The translations under genes were made by a program, and so were the position numbers. The notes under the pieces were generated by a model. The model was not told where the DNA came from, did no database searches, and saw only the letters and a list, made by a program, of their open reading frames with translations. Positions 38,484-47,139 of a stretch of DNA of 64,000 bases are shown here, in pieces. The stretch comes from Calcarisporiella thermophila CBS 279.70 (Eukaryota; Fungi; Calcarisporiellomycota): NCBI RefSeq assembly GCF_041956535.1, contig NW_027192192.1, positions 245,051 through 309,050 on the forward strand, given 5' to 3'. Position 1 is the first letter of the stretch, and each line of letters begins with the position of its first letter.

Positions 38484-39138
38484 CGCGGAAACGACAACGC
38501 GCGAGCCACGGAGCATTCATGAGAAACCTGTACACTTATTGACATTACTCTGACCGAGTTCTTATCCTTAGCATTTTTTTCTTTACTCTACAGTGATTCT
38601 GCCCTTATTTTTCTATTTATTTATTTATTACCTCTTTATTCTTTTTTGCACGTCCGCACCAGCGATCGACTGGACGTGTTTCATATTGTAAGTAATAAGT
38701 GCATCCCAGGGGAGGACCCTCAAATTCAGCTTGTGAATCGAAGCAAATGGCTTAAAGAGAGCCATTTATCTTTCACACTTTGATTGTATCCTGCAAGTGC
38801 ATAAATTTCTCGACCGCATATGGCTTCGCCTTTCCATCCTATGTGCCTCAGTGGTGAAAAATTTGGGTGTTAAAAAATATCATCAAATAGCATATATTCA
38901 TTTGATGGCTGGCTATCGCCATTGTCAAGGTCGAATATTCCATTTTATCACTCAGGAAAAACGCTGCGGCCATCAAAGTGGTTTATCACTTTTATATTGC
39001 TGTTCGTCACGAGGGGCTTGGGGATGAGAGCTGAGACCAGTTGAGTTAGAGGGGTAGAATACATCAGTGAGAAACAAGAGAGGCATTATAAATACAATAT
39101 CAAATAAGAGCTTAGAGGGTCTATTGAAGCATGCAAAA

Positions 39139-40546
39139 TTAAGACAGTATATTCTCTTTCAAAAACCTTGCAATTCTCTCTGCTCCTTGGTCGATGGTGG
39201 CATTATGCTGGAGAGAGAAATCCGGCAAAAGGGGGAAGATGTGGATCCTCGGCTCCTCCCACATACTGACCACGACTCCTTCTTCCTTCAAGCGCTTCTC
39301 AAGCTCCTTTATCTCGTCATACAGCACCTCAAGTCCACCCAAGCAAATAAAGCAAGGGGGAAAGCCGCGCAGAGATTTAGCATAGAGGGGTGAAGCCCTC
39401 GGATCCTCGAGGGAAATGGCCGGATTCTTGCCGAGATAACGGTTACTACACCTTATCGATGCATCACGGTTCAAGTAATCGTATCTGGCGAACCGATTGG
39501 ACCACAGGTCGGGTGGAGTCATTCTACACCAAGGGGAGATGAGAATGGAGCCTCCCGGCAGAGGGAGACTGCCCTGCTCCTGATCATCCTTCGCTTTCAA
39601 GAGTTGCGTTCCTAAGACGAGGGCCATATTGCCTCCCGCACTGTCGCCAGCTATGCGTAATGCAGGCCCGTTAGAACCAGAGGAGATCAATGCAATCATC
39701 TTCCCCCATCGAAAATAACGGCACGGATTATTTACCGAGAACAATGCTCTTGGCTGGGATGCCTCTCTCCTTCAGCAGGTACCGGTAGGAGGCTAAGGCC
39801 TCCTCTGGCTGGGTGGGGAACTTGTTCTCGGGGGCCAACGAGTATTCTGGACAGAAAATTGCGACCCGCTTTCCCGTTAGCTTGCTTATTTTGTTGATCC
39901 ACCTAACGTGCGTAGGCAGATACATGAGCGCATACCCGAAAAAATAGCCACCCCCTAAATTACAAAGAGAAGTCAATTATCGAGATGCTGCTCCTCACCC
40001 CCTCCCCCTCCTCCTCCCATGAAGTCTTACCATGGAAATAGAGAATAACGAGGTCGGGCTCCTCACCCTTCTCCTCAGGCTTCTGGATCCAGTATCCTTT
40101 GAACCCAGGTTTGATATTCACACTTTGCACCCACTGACTCTGGTCCACGCCGGACAGCAGATTGCCGCCAGCAGAAGAAATGTTCAGCAAAAAGCGTGAG
40201 ACATGGTGGGGTGCGTAGAAAAGGTTTCTTAGGAACGCGGCCAAAAATGCATCGCCGAAAGTCTGTCGGCCGTCATGAAGTCGAAGCGCGTATTTTACGA
40301 TCGTGAGCGTCATTTCAAATGCTGTAGGTGAATGAGAGCTCTTCCGTATTAACAATAACATTACTAGCAAAAGTCAAGCAGCCATTCATTACCCGACCAA
40401 GCAAGACATTTCAACCCAATAGCGAGATCCTATTATTGCGCATGTTAGTAGTATTCTACCCAATGTCCGCTAATTCGCGGGTGTATTTCTTAAAAAAATG
40501 AAACAATAATGAGTTTTGTAGTACAACTCACAATCAAACTATTCAT
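39139..40546 (-). CDS. HSL-family alpha/beta hydrolase (Say1/steryl-acetyl-hydrolase-like), copy 1
   Basis: YFHG/GGY oxyanion motif; EYSLAPENKFP; GDSAGGN; ISPW; GGLEVLYD; IHIF. 5' exons MNSLI / DLAIGLKCLAWS. Confidence 0.88.
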
Positions 40547-40663
40547 GGTAGTTGGTTCAATATACTATACAATTCAGCTTAGGATGTGATGGACAACATG
40601 CTGAATGTTTCCCCGCTTTTATTTCAATTGCAGAGATTCCTCGGGAAGCATATGAAATCCCTG

Positions 40664-40694
40664 GGTGTTTCGGTCAATTATTGACCGAAACACC
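40664..40694. repeat. Perfect palindrome (15-bp arms, 1-nt spacer)
   Basis: GGTGTTTCGGTCAAT-T-ATTGACCGAAACACC. Confidence 0.95.
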
Positions 40695-40712
40695 TCGGGA
40701 TGACGTAAATTA

Positions 40713-42343
40713 CAGCCGACAGCAAAAGCATAATCACAAATCATGGATTCATATAACTTTTCATATAATTTTTGTGTAATTATTTATTAATAGTGGTGTA
40801 GCTGTCTAATTGGAAAAAAAAGGTAGAAAAAAAAAGATAAGTGACAGCCGTGACTGGGGACGCGGTGAACACACTGACTGTTGTTACTTCCTGTAAACAG
40901 TACAGTGTTTCTTGCCTAGTTTTCCACCGTGTTCTATGCAGCATGCAGTGAAAGCGCCTAGCTCATCGCTCTGATTCCTGATGCCGTCACACGTGTTCCC
41001 AAAAGATGACCATCTTACGCCGATCCGGTTACAGCAGGCATTGCTTAAGTTTCTGCTCTTACTTTTGTCGCACGCCACCGCGCAACATCCAAGTGAGTTA
41101 TCTGCGCACCAGCCGTCACCACGTTTGGCCAACTGGTTTTTCGCATGCTCGCTTACAGATCTCTTGACCTTACGTGCGTCACAACTGTTCATACAGTTGT
41201 TGAATAAATCACGCACTGTCTCCACGCAGAACGCAGCGGCCATAGCGGCTTTAGCTTCACAATACCCAGGTACGAAGCATGCTACACACCCCGCGGCTAC
41301 GACACCAGATCCTACGCACTTATTCGAGACCTTCGCGTGCGGTGGTGCATATTTGCTGGCTATGCACCCCGCCTGCTGACGTTGCTCGGGAGTCAGTTGA
41401 CGTGCTGGAACATGCTGTGTCCACACACAGACTGCAAGATTCAAAAGTATCGCTGCGATCGTGAGTGTCTTACTGTATAGGTTCGTATTGTGGTAAGGGT
41501 CTATATAAACGGCGAATTATAATAGCTAATCCTATTATTATAATGTAAAGCTGTATGATCACTACTGTAAGCAGCTGCTCTGCTTTAAGCATATGTGAAA
41601 AACAATGGGTATTCGCATGTTTTTGTTGACTTTCTCGACAATTTTTTGTGCTTTTTATATCAAGTTCTTTTTATGTTTCCGACCATTTTTTTGTACGCCT
41701 GTGAAATAAGCTTTGAACCTGGATAAGCGACCGGCCGGTGAAATCGTAATCTAGTTTACGGCCATCTTTAGTGGAAAGTGTTAGATCCCGTATTGTCTCG
41801 CTTTTCTTGTCGAAAGATAGATACCTAATAAGACTTGGTTTTTTGCTTGCGCCTATTTTTGTTTAACCTATTTGACCTTCCACTACCCCTTTGGTATTTC
41901 GTAATTATTGCCCCCGTAACACCTGCGATTTCATCCTTAAAACGGATTTTACACTCAATTTTGCAGCAAAACTTCACAAAGAATTCCAGATAGAATTCTG
42001 CGTTTTCAGTCTGCAAAAAGTAAACGACAAAAAAAGTTGTCTCGAATATGGAGAGTAATCAAAACTCTGCTAAGAAAATGAACTAAGAGCATTCAATCAT
42101 CAAAATGGTATCTTAATCCAAAAAAAAAAAACCAGCAAAATATAGATATGCACTTTTTCCAAATTCAGTACCCCGGTGAACCAGGTTTCTTTCTTTAAGT
42201 CAGGGTGATATATACCTCTGAAAATAGTGTAGGAGCTGTAGATTTTTCTCAGCATATTTTCAGTGTTCCCTAGAAAGGAGCTACTGAAATATTTAATTTT
42301 AACAAAGGATATTCATCTGTGACTATGTTTTTGCGGTCGGCTG
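40713..42343. mobile_element. Non-autonomous TIR element (Tc1/mariner-like, TA flanks) carrying a cargo gene
   Basis: Left end TA|CAGCCGACAGCAAAAGCATAATCACAAAT. Right end, reverse-complemented, TA|CAGCCGACCGCAAAAACATAGTCACAGAT (25/29 identical). Absent from the paralogous position upstream of hydrolase copy 2. Confidence 0.8.
40884..41486 (-). CDS. Secreted Cys-rich preproprotein with Kex2-type sites; C-terminal KP6 killer-toxin-like module; start codon uncertain (ACG)
   Basis: Open frame (T)NLYSKTLTIAAILLNLAVCVWT, then an 8-Cys module, KVKR, a spacer, LAKR and a 78-aa 10-Cys module GDGWCADNSLGCC...SNACC...TC...FTACC...HC. Confidence 0.7.
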   Translation of the reverse strand, partial: TNLYSKTLTIAAILLNLAVCVWTQHVPARQLTPEQRQQAGCIASKYAPPHAKVSNKCVGSGVVAAGCVACFVPGYCEAKAAMAAAFCVETVRDLFNNCMNSCDARKVKRSVSEHAKNQLAKRGDGWCADNSLGCCAVACDKSKSRNLSNACCNRIGVRWSSFGNTCDGIRNQSDELGAFTACCIEHGGKLGKKHCTVYRK

Positions 42344-42997
42344 TATTTCCGTCAGCCACCAATCTAAATCTAGAGGCCATCTTTAGGAAAATGGAGCCGA
42401 AATATCCCAGTATAGGAATATTCAAGCGAGAGGTGGCCATAGATTAGTTATGAAGTTATTTTTCGTTGCGGTTTTTACAGCCAACTGTGAGGTCATGACC
42501 GCTAAGTGATATCCTTCAATGAGACAGCAATGCTAATCTAACCCTGCAGAAGAAAGGGGCTGATATGTTGAGATAAAACTTCAGCACTCGCATTATTTTA
42601 AGGATGCATTCTACCCTGGCGTCGTCATTCTATCGTATATACCACGATGATGGACAAACTTGGATGTTAAGACATAGCCATAAGTATACACTCATTGGAT
42701 AGCTGCCTATCACAACAGCCACAGTGACCGCTGTAAAAGTTGGGCACACTCATTCTTGGACCTCCTAGTGATATAGCCTCTTTTTCATTTTATCCCTCGG
42801 GAAAAAAAACTCTGCTGCCATCAAAGCAGCTTACTCTCTTCGATGACTTTTTATTATTTTTCTTTTTGAGGGGTTTGGGGATGAAAATCGAGAGTGGGGC
42901 GGTTAGAAGCATATAAATAGAAGGCAGCAGTGAATAGGGGAAAACACGAGGATAAAACACCAATAAGAACTTGAAGGGTATACTGGAGCAGGCAAAA

Positions 42998-44406
42998 TTA
43001 AGATAGTACATTCTCTCTCAAAAACCGTGCAATTTTCTCCGCTCCTTGGTCGATGGTGGCATAGTGGTGGAGAGAGAGATCCGGCAAAATAGCGAAGATA
43101 TGGATCCTTGGTTCTTCCCACATACTGAAAACGACCCCGTCTTCCTTCATTCGCTTCTCAAGGTCCTTTATCTCGTCGTACATCACCTCAAGTCCACCAC
43201 AGGAAATAAAACAGGGGGGGAAACCGCGCAGGGATTTGGCAAAAACGGGTGAAACTCTCGGATCCTCGAGGGAAATGGCCGGATTCTCACCAAGATATCG
43301 GACACGACACACTTTCGCCGCTCTGATGTCCAAATAGTCATACTTGGCGAACCGATTGGACCACAGGTCGGGTGGAGTCATTCTACACCAAGGGGAGATG
43401 AGAATGGAGCCTCCCGGTAGAGGGAGACTGCCCGGCTCCTGATCATCCTTCGCTTTCAAGAGTTGCGTTCCTAAGACGAGGGCCATATTGCCTCCCGCAC
43501 TGTCGCCAGCTATGCGTTATGCAGGCCCGTTAGAACCAGAGGAGATCAATGCAATCATCTTCCCCCATCGAAAATAACGGCACGGATTATTTACCGAGAA
43601 CAATACTCTTGGCCGGGATGCCTCTCTCCTTCAGCAGGTACCGGTAGGAGGCTAAGGCCTCCTCTGGCTGGGTGGGGAACTTGTTCTCGGGGGCCAACGA
43701 GTATTCTGGACAGAAAATTGCGACTCGCTTTCCCGTTAGCTTGCTTATTTTGTTGATCCACCTAACGTGCGTAGGCAGATACATGAGCGCATACCCGAAA
43801 AAATAGCCACCCCCTAAATTACAAAGAGAAGTCAATTATCGAGATGCTTCTCCTCACCCCCCCCCCTCCTCCTCCCATGAAGTCTTACCATGGAAATAGA
43901 GAATAACGAGGTCGGGCTCCTCACCCTTCTCCTCAGGCTTCTGGATCCAGTATCCTTTGAACCCAGGTTTGATATTCACACTTTGCACCCACTGACTCTG
44001 GTCCACGCCGGACAGCAAATTGCAGCAAGCGGAAGAAGTGTTTAGCAAAAAGCGTGAAACATTGCGCGGTGCATAGAAAAAATTTCTTAGGAACGCGGCC
44101 ACAAATGCATCGCCGAAAGTCTGTCGGCCGTCATGAAGTCGGAGCGCATATTTTACGACCGTGATGGACATTTCATATACTGTGGATTAATGAGAGCTCT
44201 TCCGTATTAACAATAACATTGCTAGCAAAAGCCAAGCAGTTAATATTTACCCGACCAAGCAAGGCATCGCAGCCCAAGAACGAGATCCTATGGTTCATTA
44301 TGGCGCATTTTAGTACCCAATATCAGTGGAATCAAACGAGTCATTTTTGGAAAAAAAAACATACTAGAAACAATTCTGTAGTGCAACTCGCAATCACACT
44401 TTTCAT
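42998..44406 (-). CDS. HSL-family alpha/beta hydrolase, copy 2 (tandem duplicate)
   Basis: Same exon structure and motifs as copy 1, with central exons nearly identical. The first donor reads GCGAGT. Confidence 0.86.
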
Positions 44407-44603
44407 GGCAGCGGGTTCAATGCACTATCCAATTCAGCTAAGGAGGCAATGGGCAACAAGATGGGAGTATATACCGCTTTTATTACAGTAGCGGAGATTC
44501 CCCAGGAAGCATATGAAATCCCAAAGTTTATCAGCTAGGGACCTCCAGCCACCAATCTAATTCAGGGACCGTTTCTAGGAAGAAGGTACGGAAGCTTCCC
44601 AGT

Positions 44604-44839
44604 GCAAGGCTTTTTTCCCATTGTCCCCCGCGGGGGCTGCTGTCTCTCTCCTTGGCGATCCGATTTACCCCGCGGCCCATATGACCCCATTTTCCACGTT
44701 GGCGTATCTGTATCTATGTCTGTATACAAAATGGCAAATAGAGACGCGATAATAATATTATCGCGTCTCTATTTGCCATTTTGTATAGGGCCAATTCACT
44801 CCCTTCATATTATGAATATATATATAATTGGCCTTATAC
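44604..44839. mobile_element. 236-bp MITE-like insertion with a 9-bp target-site duplication
   Basis: CTTCCCAGT at 44595-44603 and 44840-44848. The paralogous site near 42404-42411 has a single ATCCCAGT and no insert. Confidence 0.7.
44723..44787. repeat. Perfect palindrome (32-bp arms, 1-nt spacer)
   Basis: TATACAAAATGGCAAATAGAGACGCGATAATA-A-TATTATCGCGTCTCTATTTGCCATTTTGTATA. Confidence 0.97.
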
Positions 44840-45747
44840 CTTCCCAGTTCAGCAATATTCAGTCAGGAGGTGGTCATGAACTAGTCATGCTGGTTATTTT
44901 TCATGGCGGATTTTACAGCCAGCAGTGGAGTCGTGGCCACAAGTTGGTATCCTTTATCGAAACAGTAATGCTTCAATAACTCTCTGCAGACGATCGGCGG
45001 GAATAGGTCGACGCGAAACCCCAATCCCTACATGCTTTTAAGGGATATATTCTACTCTGGCTCCTAAGAATAGCTTGACCAATTTGGAATTGATCTTGAA
45101 AATGAGTATAACTTCATGGTGCAAGCTAATACCCTCAGTGGATGGTTGTGTGACAAGAAAAGTTTAGAAGGGACTACACCAAAATATGGTTAATAAACCG
45201 AGACTTTGATTTGAAAGCAGCTCAGCGATGACCAAGTGCTCTCTAACATGTTGTATCCTAAGGGGGAGCATTTTGCCGATATCTCGTTTGATTTTGGGAT
45301 CAATTAAATTGCCTTTTTGCTCTTGGGAACTTGAATCATTAAGAGTCTTATAATGTAAAAGGTCGAACTTAAAAAATCATAACCACACTTGCACTAAATG
45401 CGGTAAGCGACGGTAAAGAGCTTCACACAAGTCCACCGTTGAGGGTCGGGACTATCACAGAATGTCTTTGTGCTAGATATTCGGCTTCATCTCTGCCTTT
45501 CTTGAAGGTCAAACCAATCTCTGTTCTATCGATTTGGAAAGTTGTTTTGTTGGTGTTACACAATCTCCAATTGGCCTGCCGCAAAAGGTTATCAACATAT
45601 AAATGGACAAGCCACCTTGCGGGCTACACCCTCGGAAGTTTCACGTGTTGCTTGTTCAATTTTATTTCATTTTTCTTTCTTCTCCACATTTTTTCACTTT
45701 CTCTTTGATATAGCCGTATTTGCTATAATCCAACCGGAGTGGACACC

Positions 45748-47139
45748 ATGGCTCGTTCAAAGCTCAGCTTGATCAATTACATCTTGGTTCGTGGCATAGT
45801 CCTATCGAAGCTTATTCCATTATGTCTATACTGATTTCGAATACTTCTCTCCACAGAGGATCTTCTCCGAAATCAAAGGGGTGACAGAAGCAGGTGATAT
45901 ACCCACATGTTCAACCTCGTTACCCGCGGTGGCCGCCTCTCCGCGGTGCTAACTCTATTACCTCCTTTCACAGCTCTAAGGGGGGCCATCGTCTCGCTGC
46001 AATACATGGTCGGGATTCACGATGGAAAGCGCATGTACATCGACGCCCTTATTGTAACCCTATTCAAAGTCTTCTTCAAGCACTATCTCCCTAACATGCG
46101 GGGGCTCTTTAAGGTGTTCAAAACCTGCGTTAATGCGCTTACCGGCGTCCGAGGGAAGAATAGAATCGAGCCCGTGGTAGAGAAGGGCTTTAAGGGATAC
46201 TGGGTGAAGGAGAAGCACGACACGAGGGATCCAGAGCTGGTGGTTCTCTTTTTCCATGGTAATTTCCGGATTGGAGCTCGAGGCCTCGCCTCCCATATAT
46301 ATGTATTGATATGTAGAGCTAACCTGAATCTCGGAGACAGGTGGCGGTTACGTGTTTGGGTATCCCCTCATGTGGCTACCCGCATATCATAAGTGGATTG
46401 AGAAAATACGCCAAGTAACGGGGAAGCGGACGGCCGTGCTCTGCCCAGAATATTCACTGGCCCCCGAAAAGAAATTCCCCACTCAATTGAACCAGGCTCT
46501 AGCCGCCTACCGATATCTACTAGTGGATAAAGGCATCTCGGCACGGCATATTGTTCCAGGTACGTCCTTATTTGGTTTCTGAATGGGTGACCTTGTCCAG
46601 GTGAATTTATTGTTTTCGCATCGATAGCGGGTGACAGCGCAGGTGGAAATCTTGCCCTCTCCCTCTGTCTCAAACTCAATGAGGATATTAACAATGGAAC
46701 GCCCGGCTCCCTTCCCATGCCCGGAGGTTTAATCACCGTCTCTCCTTGGTGCAGCATGGCACTTGAAGGGCCTTCACTTAAACACAACGATCGCTATGAC
46801 TATATCACCTACTCCAAGATTTCCGAATGTCGAGATCTGATCTTAGAGAGCAAGGCGCTGTATACCGATCCAAGAGTATCCCCATTACATGCCAAATCCA
46901 CTCGAGGACTGCCTCCTAATTTTGTCATTGCGGGTGAACTCGAAGGACTTTACGACGATATTCAGGCATTGGTTGAGAAATTTAAGCGAGATGGAGTTGA
47001 GGTTGAATTTTGGCATGAGCCACGAATCCACGACTTTCCCCTCATGGAAGATTTTCCTCCATGGAAATTTACCACCATCAATCGTGGGGCGGAGAAGGTG
47101 GCCCAATTCATCAACAGAAATGTGTTAGGGCAAGAGTAG
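45748..47139 (+). CDS. HSL-family alpha/beta hydrolase, copy 3 (older, inverted paralogue)
   Basis: FFHG/GGY; EYSLAPEKKFP; GDSAGGN; VSPW; IHDF. Intron positions equivalent to copies 1 and 2. Confidence 0.88.

Follow-up and report, generated by a model that had tools for sequence, protein, structure and literature searches.

A probable internally substituted Tc1-family transposon enclosing a candidate secreted cysteine-rich gene in Calcarisporiella thermophila

Small secreted cysteine-rich proteins of fungi are often lineage-specific and encoded next to transposons, and the route by which they come to lie there is debated. A locus in the fungus Calcarisporiella thermophila CBS 279.70 poses this question in compact form. 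Within the 64,000-nucleotide stretch analyzed here (contig NW_027192192.1, positions 245,051 to 309,050 of the forward strand; "the window," whose own numbering is used throughout), one of two tandem esterase units carries a block of DNA that has no counterpart at its paralogue and that encloses an open reading frame (ORF) for a Cys-rich protein. A preliminary description, made from the bases alone, had read this block as a toxin cassette mobilized by a transposon. Is the block a transposon, did it bring the gene to this site, and does the gene encode a toxin? The element at window 40713–42343 (1,631 bp) is a non-autonomous member of the Tc1/mariner superfamily, Tc1 (DD34E) family, an assignment supported by its ends and by its relatives in the same genome. 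We consider it probable that this is a long-armed transposon whose interior has been substituted by a mosaic cargo, which includes a unit for a putative secreted Cys-rich protein. A toxin cassette working today is an unlikely reading of the locus.

The position of the element is defined by comparison of the two esterase units. Window 39103–40661 aligns with 42962–44522 at 88% identity over 1,570 columns, and the alignment picks up again at 42353–42411, which corresponds to 44546–44603; the preliminary description had placed the break and the resumption at the same points. Between them, copy 1 holds ~1.69 kb that copy 2 is without, and the element itself, which occupies a TA site in the promoter region of the copy 1 esterase, is missing from the paralogue. 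The earlier claim of an insertion into copy 1 holds insofar as the block lacks a counterpart in copy 2, but the difference between the copies is not a clean one. On the left side, copy 1 has ~49 additional bp, on the right side 7, and copy 2 has 23 poorly alignable bp at the matching site. The additional bases on the left include a palindrome (40657–40701) immediately beside the element, with 22-nt arms that are 91% complementary around a 1-nt center; the paralogue lacks it, and its single occurrence in the genome rules out a repeated mini-element. A Tc1-type excision footprint in the paralogue was considered and rejected, as models with CAG, CAGC, or CTG between two TAs aligned no better than a plain empty site.

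The element opens with CAG at 40713 and closes with CTG at 42343. A repeat search returned inverted arms at 40708–40741 and 42315–42348, which span 34 nt at 85% complementarity; the runner-up inverted pairs in the same 2.5 kb were 22–24 nt long and 75–91% complementary. When the whole element was compared with the 28-Mb genome, 22 places matched, nearly all of them to its last 270 bp (window 42076–42345), at 73–92% identity. A genome-wide count of TA plus the terminal motif gave 15 occurrences, compared with 0 for a reversed control, and at other sites ~12 of 15 family ends have a TA directly before them. One relative, on contig C26 (C26:79627–81256; L004:1503–3128), is an autonomous copy of 1,626 bp with arms of ~235 bp and an uninterrupted 341-amino-acid transposase ORF that matches DDE_3 (2.2e-17) and HTH_Tnp_Tc3_2 (2.6e-8). 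Its catalytic residues are D151, D243, and E278, with the spacing of 34 from D243 to E278 that marks the Tc1 (DD34E) family. This is the one intact copy in the subfamily of the window element, whose ends are 87–88% identical to it. Blastn and tblastn searches with the C26 copy and its transposase matched only the ends of the window element, and no transposase remnant emerged below an E value of 0.17. Across the genome, at least 125 Tc1/mariner transposase-like stretches are 29–100% identical to the C26 protein; most are interrupted by stop codons (TAA, TAG, or TGA), and open frames persist in several diverged subfamilies. The preliminary description had assigned the block to Tc1/mariner from its CAG-ended, TA-flanked inverted repeats and had seen no transposase inside. 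Both statements are borne out, the first by the 34-nt arms and by terminal inverted repeats (TIRs) held in common with a DD34E autonomous copy, the second by searches that find the ends alone. The genome-wide search that it proposed shows the TIR to be a repeated family sequence, with 15 terminal motifs and an autonomous DDE element bearing these ends on C26.

The terminal features of the element are as follows.

40711–40712, unstranded: left-hand TA of the target-site duplication (read from the bases).
40713–40742, plus strand: left TIR, the last 30 bp of the family 3' end only, 87% identical to the 3' end of the autonomous copy.
42043–42343, minus strand: right arm, the family 5' arm, 88% identical to the autonomous copy over 42078–42343.
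42344–42345, unstranded: right-hand TA of the target-site duplication (read from the bases).
40701–40709 and 42346–42354, unstranded: outer 9-mers, outside the family TIR, an inverted match at 8 of 9 positions with a 1-nt offset.

The two ends are of different types and of very unequal length. The left end is of the 3' type; its inner part ends CACAAATC, and family similarity ceases after 30 bp. The right arm, by contrast with these 30 bp, holds ~270–300 bp of family sequence and is 88% identical to the 5' arm of the autonomous copy (267 columns) vs 79% to its 3' arm; fainter similarity reaches out to ~42043, ~35 bp before the expected position of the transposase ATG. Because the right arm is closer to the 5' arm than to the 3' arm, the lost transposase gene would have been on the minus strand, as is the cargo ORF, and the element is reversed in the window. 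Inner direct repeats, as in the inverted repeat-direct repeat layout, were looked for in the arms and not found. The outer 9-mers, which the preliminary description had listed as a further inverted TGACG(T/G)AAA match, do exist but are no feature of the family: four other paired family copies have no symmetry beyond the TA, which rules them out as part of the TIR, and in the best alignment the paralogue is missing them too. Either the element inserted at the center of a 21-bp palindrome that copy 2 is without, or these bases came with the element.

Other family members show what else befalls such elements in this genome. At C6:67123–67658 (L026), a 536-bp deletion derivative has its first 523 bp joined to its last 27 bp with ~9 bp of overlap at the junction, and it is flanked by TA on one side and GA/TC on the other. 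Like the window element, this copy pairs a 5' part with a minimal 3' end, so such ends recur in the family. A further copy at C47:14815–17084 (L024) has a stop-ridden transposase gene and contains a nested 1-kb piece of another repeat with at least 30 genome matches, of which the last ~60 bp is most often repeated and is presumably the terminal repeat of a different element. The additional 1 kb was considered as cargo and rejected on account of its being a nested multi-copy repeat. The right arm of the window element is 85–90% identical to at least five other family copies and has diverged ~12% from its closest relatives; repeat-induced point mutation was rejected as the source of that divergence, given the mixed substitution spectrum.

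Between its ends, the window element consists of ~1.3 kb of unrelated DNA in place of the transposase gene and nearly all of the 3' arm. The interior (window 40745–42070) is single-copy in the genome except for one piece of 5S ribosomal DNA (rDNA). It comprises these parts.

40743–40883, minus strand: AT-rich stretch on the 3' side of the cargo ORF, including an AATAAA-like motif near 40785 and matching neither the family nor any other part of the genome.
40884–41513, minus strand: cargo open frame, 209 codons plus stop (codons from 41513 to 40887, stop ending at 40884); 40884–41444 if counted from a TTG.
40887–41120, minus strand: C-terminal module, 78 amino acids, 10 Cys (frame translation).
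41121–41159, minus strand: 13-amino-acid spacer between two Lys-Arg sites (frame translation).
41160–41417, minus strand: N-terminal module, 86 amino acids, 8 Cys, ending in Lys-Arg (frame translation).
41418–41462, minus strand: signal-peptide-like hydrophobic segment (frame translation; signal peptide judged by eye).
41501–41507, minus strand: TATA-box-like motif ~40 nt upstream of an ACG codon (read from the bases; predicted promoter).
41514–42042, unstranded: AT-rich DNA upstream of the ORF, single-copy in the genome save the 5S piece.
41720–41799, plus strand: partial 5S rDNA unit that covers 34 nt of spacer and then the first 46 nt of 5S rRNA, 76–80% identical to two genes on contig C31.

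At least part of the filler derives from chromosomal rDNA, which fits a patchwork generated by template switching, and a second spacer match of 28 bp at 41841–41868 is possible. Rfam returned no match on the whole element, and the 5S fragment is below Rfam detection; the two C31 genes score 96–97 bits with RF00001. For the ORF and the remaining interior, no parent locus was found in the genome, and only the 80 bp of 5S sequence is traceable. The C31 pair (C31:280129–280655; L020, L032, L033) consists of two full-length 5S rRNA genes in tandem on the same strand, with starts 408 bp apart; it lies within the last 2 kb of the stretch of contig C31 analyzed and may be part of a 5S array. Scored genome-wide, 5S genes number at least four.

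For the cargo ORF, Markov shuffles of the same bases reached 200 open codons in 0.28% of cases, and the frame forms a GC island (51%) within an interior that otherwise has 36% GC. Taken by itself, the number of Cys residues is unexceptional for the base composition, with 19 or more Cys in some frame in 9% of shuffles. Judging from the translation, the protein would be secreted and cleaved, with the spacer between the Lys-Arg sites presumably removed by a Kex2-type protease. The N and C modules have no similarity to each other that would indicate an internal duplication. At the expected position of the first codon, directly before the hydrophobic core, stands an ACG codon (41462–41460). A possible upstream exon, read from sequence alone, begins with an ATG at 41618–41616 and would be joined through a GT at 41565 and an AG at 41474–41473, which delimit a 93-nt in-frame intron; the TATA motif falls inside this intron, and the donor site is weak. 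An ORF on the opposite strand (40981–41379) was rejected as a gene, having neither a family nor a paralogue.

Searches for relatives of the cargo were negative at every level. There was no homologue in Pfam for the whole ORF or its halves up to E 10, no match to PDB sequences, no neighbor by features in the ESM Atlas for the ORF or the C module, and no paralogue in six frames of its own genome. Neither 5.8 billion proteins (word-indexed) nor 1.84 billion representatives (full HMMER scan) contained a homologue, collections that may omit records of this genome or a very near one and leave close kin of the cargo possible. With no homologue found, a gene tree is impossible. The interior is foreign to the transposon family and plausibly holds a secreted Cys-rich gene unit. 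Of the earlier description of such a gene as the sole cargo, the plausible unit stands, with its leader and its 8 plus 10 Cys residues; the frame has no in-frame ATG, however, and a 5S rDNA piece lies inside the element as well.

Structure prediction bears on the remaining question of what the protein might do. The model of the whole protein, at a predicted local distance difference test (pLDDT) value of 35, is unusable, and no fold for the N module was obtained from it. For the C module, a single-sequence AlphaFold 2 model (pLDDT 57, predicted template modeling score 0.49) has a beta-alpha-beta-beta-alpha-beta pattern. Foldseek against the PDB placed Zt-KP6-1 at ranks 1–3 (E 0.07, probability 0.97, template modeling score 0.55), with KP6 beta (rank 9) and KP6 alpha (rank 31) further down. 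VIA-align, which is independent of Foldseek, was run against 48,161 representative chains and also ranked Zt-KP6-1 first (Z 6.4, root-mean-square deviation 2.9 over 60 residues), followed by KP6 alpha in second place (Z 5.5) and KP6 beta in fourth (Z 4.8); Z values under 8 are middling and can reflect a common arrangement. These results lend weak support to a KP6-like alpha/beta sandwich for the C module, a fold in which disulfides stabilize four strands in a sheet and two helices. Sequence kinship to KP6 members was absent from Pfam up to E 10, from PDB sequences, and from the collections of 5.8 billion and 1.84 billion proteins. The killer-toxin-like label of the preliminary description survives to the extent that KP6-fold proteins are the best match of the C module; it finds no sequence similarity behind it, and the underlying model is one of pLDDT 57. 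Proteins with the KP6 fold occur widely across fungi; some inhibit growth, and others are plain effectors (PMC12382754). As the fold occurs in non-toxic effectors too, a KP6-like fold is no proof of a toxin, and any toxin role of the cargo is conjecture.

How, then, did this interior come to lie between Tc1-type ends at a TA upstream of the esterase? In the mechanism that we favor, the transposase gene and nearly the whole 3' arm would have been replaced by ~1.3 kb of unrelated DNA, a mosaic of a 5S rDNA fragment, AT-rich DNA, and a compact transcription unit (TATA, 209-codon frame, and A/T-rich tail) for a putative secreted, Lys-Arg-processed, two-module Cys-rich protein whose C module is possibly KP6-like. 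The foreign DNA might have been gained by template switching in gap repair or through use of the outer ends of two neighboring insertions. Transposase from an autonomous copy such as C26:79627–81256 would bind the ~30-bp terminal repeats, excise the loaded unit, and paste it into another TA, and the unit would have come to the present site already loaded. That the loaded unit moved as such we hold to be slightly more probable than the contrary. In its favor, paralogue homology ends at the outer edges of the repeats, and the pair of ends is complementary in type (one 5', one 3'), with a TA next to each. The absence of a second cargo copy is the trace expected if the gene was cut and pasted rather than copied. 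Several observations weigh on the other side. The composite is single-copy in the 28-Mb assembly, with no second insertion, donor, or source locus, so its transposition as a unit is putative. The paralogue's empty site is imprecise, with additional bases that differ left and right; the left end measures only 30 bp, which may be too little for a long-armed family; and the ~12% divergence of the arm makes the event an old rather than a recent one. On the side of the cargo, the leader has no ATG in frame before it, with the ATGs encountered first after the TATA motif lying out of frame, and the billions of proteins searched contain no homologue; the C module model is of low confidence, and the Atlas gives generic ferredoxin-like folds only. 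The trans mobilization envisaged in the preliminary description is conceivable given the intact C26 transposase, but the other copies with the same cargo that it suggested looking for are not in the genome, and no second loaded copy accompanies it.

The near-identity in length to the autonomous copy (1,631 vs 1,626 bp) also fits overwriting in place. A complete element would have entered the TA after the esterase duplication, and repair of a break or an excision from ectopic templates would have overwritten the transposase gene, leaving a scar that never moved in its loaded form. A composite present only once, a patchwork interior with a piece of 5S rDNA as template switching would give, and internally deleted relatives at other sites are all in keeping with such a history. 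Repair by copying, however, should leave its template, and the ORF and its flanks have no second copy; the source could have been lost over the time represented by 12% divergence. Overall, we judge this history rather unlikely, and transposition of the loaded unit remains the one we prefer. Far less probable still is that the Cys-rich gene is an old resident upstream of the esterase that was deleted from copy 2, with the inverted ends as remnants of separate insertions. The marked inequality of the ends (30 bp vs ~270–300 bp) and a paralogue gap that is not base-precise would suit this account, but homology breaks within ~50 bp (left) and 8 bp (right) of the outer ends of the repeats, which is rare for a random deletion, and the ends are correctly oriented, one of the 5' and one of the 3' type, each adjoining a TA. 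A separate doubt concerns the ORF rather than its arrival: it may be no working gene, whether a chance or relic frame in captured filler or a recently dead gene, in which case the element is a non-autonomous transposon filled with junk. The missing start, the lack of any homologue or paralogue in the collections and the genome, the 9% of shuffles that match its Cys count, and the whole-protein pLDDT of 35 all suit that view, to which we assign a substantial chance that stays short of even. Against it are the rarity of 209 open codons in shuffles (0.28%), the coding-like GC island, the hydrophobic leader followed by two modules with even numbers of Cys (8 and 10) parted by two Lys-Arg sites, the leading place of KP6-fold proteins for the C module in two independent searches, and the possible upstream exon, which could supply a start. 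The lack of an in-frame AUG most likely means that the cargo gene is decaying or poorly translated today. At the other extreme, the element could be a fungal example of a Pack-type Tc1 transposon: its ends would enclose an entire preprotoxin gene of the two-module, KP6-like type with a non-AUG or spliced start, and the C26 transposase could still move it. We think this improbable; if true, the locus would be a self-contained mobile antagonism or effector cassette of 1.6 kb, smaller than any transposon-borne toxin vehicle so far described in eukaryotes.

Comparison with known systems indicates which aspects of the element are familiar. Pack-type elements of the Mariner superfamily are known from rice, where they are low-copy and sometimes contain DNA from several loci (PMC8903248; for Pack-CACTA, PMC6379663). 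The window element resembles them as a non-autonomous TIR element of low copy number with a TA duplication, no transposase, and an interior apparently assembled from chromosomal, non-transposon DNA of more than one origin. The rice elements, however, are found in plant hosts and hold mostly gene fragments with identifiable parents, whereas here a fungus has one copy in which only the 5S piece is traced and the cargo resembles a whole small gene with its own predicted promoter. A precedent for a transposon-borne effector or toxin in fungi is ToxhAT, a 14-kb TIR transposon that carries the ToxA effector gene in wheat pathogens (PMC6737239). Both are class II elements with inverted repeats around a gene for a small secreted protein. 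ToxhAT is hAT-associated and has 74-bp TIRs, several genes, no target-site duplication, and documented horizontal transfer, whereas the window element is Tc1-type, 1.6 kb long, and TA-flanked, with one ORF that lacks a start codon and no sign of transfer. In Fusarium, miniature inverted-repeat transposable elements termed mimps mark effector promoters (PMC3599309). The mimp/impala system of Fusarium oxysporum likewise involves non-autonomous Tc1/mariner derivatives that lie near genes for small secreted Cys-rich proteins and need an autonomous relative in the genome; the mimps differ in being a few hundred base pairs long and in sitting in effector promoters, so that the gene is not enclosed between their ends. 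With regard to the cargo, the UmV-KP6 preprotoxin and Zt-KP6-1 (PMC12382754; PDB 6qpk, 1kp6, 4gvb) offer a parallel in layout, namely a leader, a Cys-rich module of ~80 amino acids, a spacer bounded by dibasic sites, and a second module of ~80 amino acids, and KP6-fold proteins are the best structural match of the C module model. The two differ in that there is no sequence similarity, the Z values of 5.5–6.4 come from a low-confidence model, and the window spacer is 13 amino acids long.

The kind of element is thus already known, and the present one stands apart as a 1.6-kb Tc1-type unit that encloses what is apparently one whole small gene. In the debate over how genes for small secreted Cys-rich proteins come to adjoin transposons, the locus offers a case in which a candidate gene of this sort lies between the two ends of a single Tc1-type element, and an intact transposase of the same family is encoded in the same genome. 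If the unit were shown to move, it would provide a simple, testable route for relocating or spreading effector-like genes, on a scale far smaller than that of ToxhAT or Starships. Apart from its cargo, the locus supplies a well-defined, internally substituted Tc1 element that is useful for transposon annotation of this genome, and it documents a family that takes up foreign DNA, pieces of rDNA included.

Two minor observations concern the surrounding esterase genes. Window 38900–47139 contains three successive Abhydrolase_3 (esterase/lipase-like) genes: a tandem minus-strand pair, 88% identical at the DNA level, and a plus-strand gene at 45907–47139. Esterase copy 2 has an insertion of its own relative to copy 1, ~238 bp at window 44604–44841 (homology skips from 44603 to 44842), and this insertion holds a long perfect palindrome at ~44725–44790.

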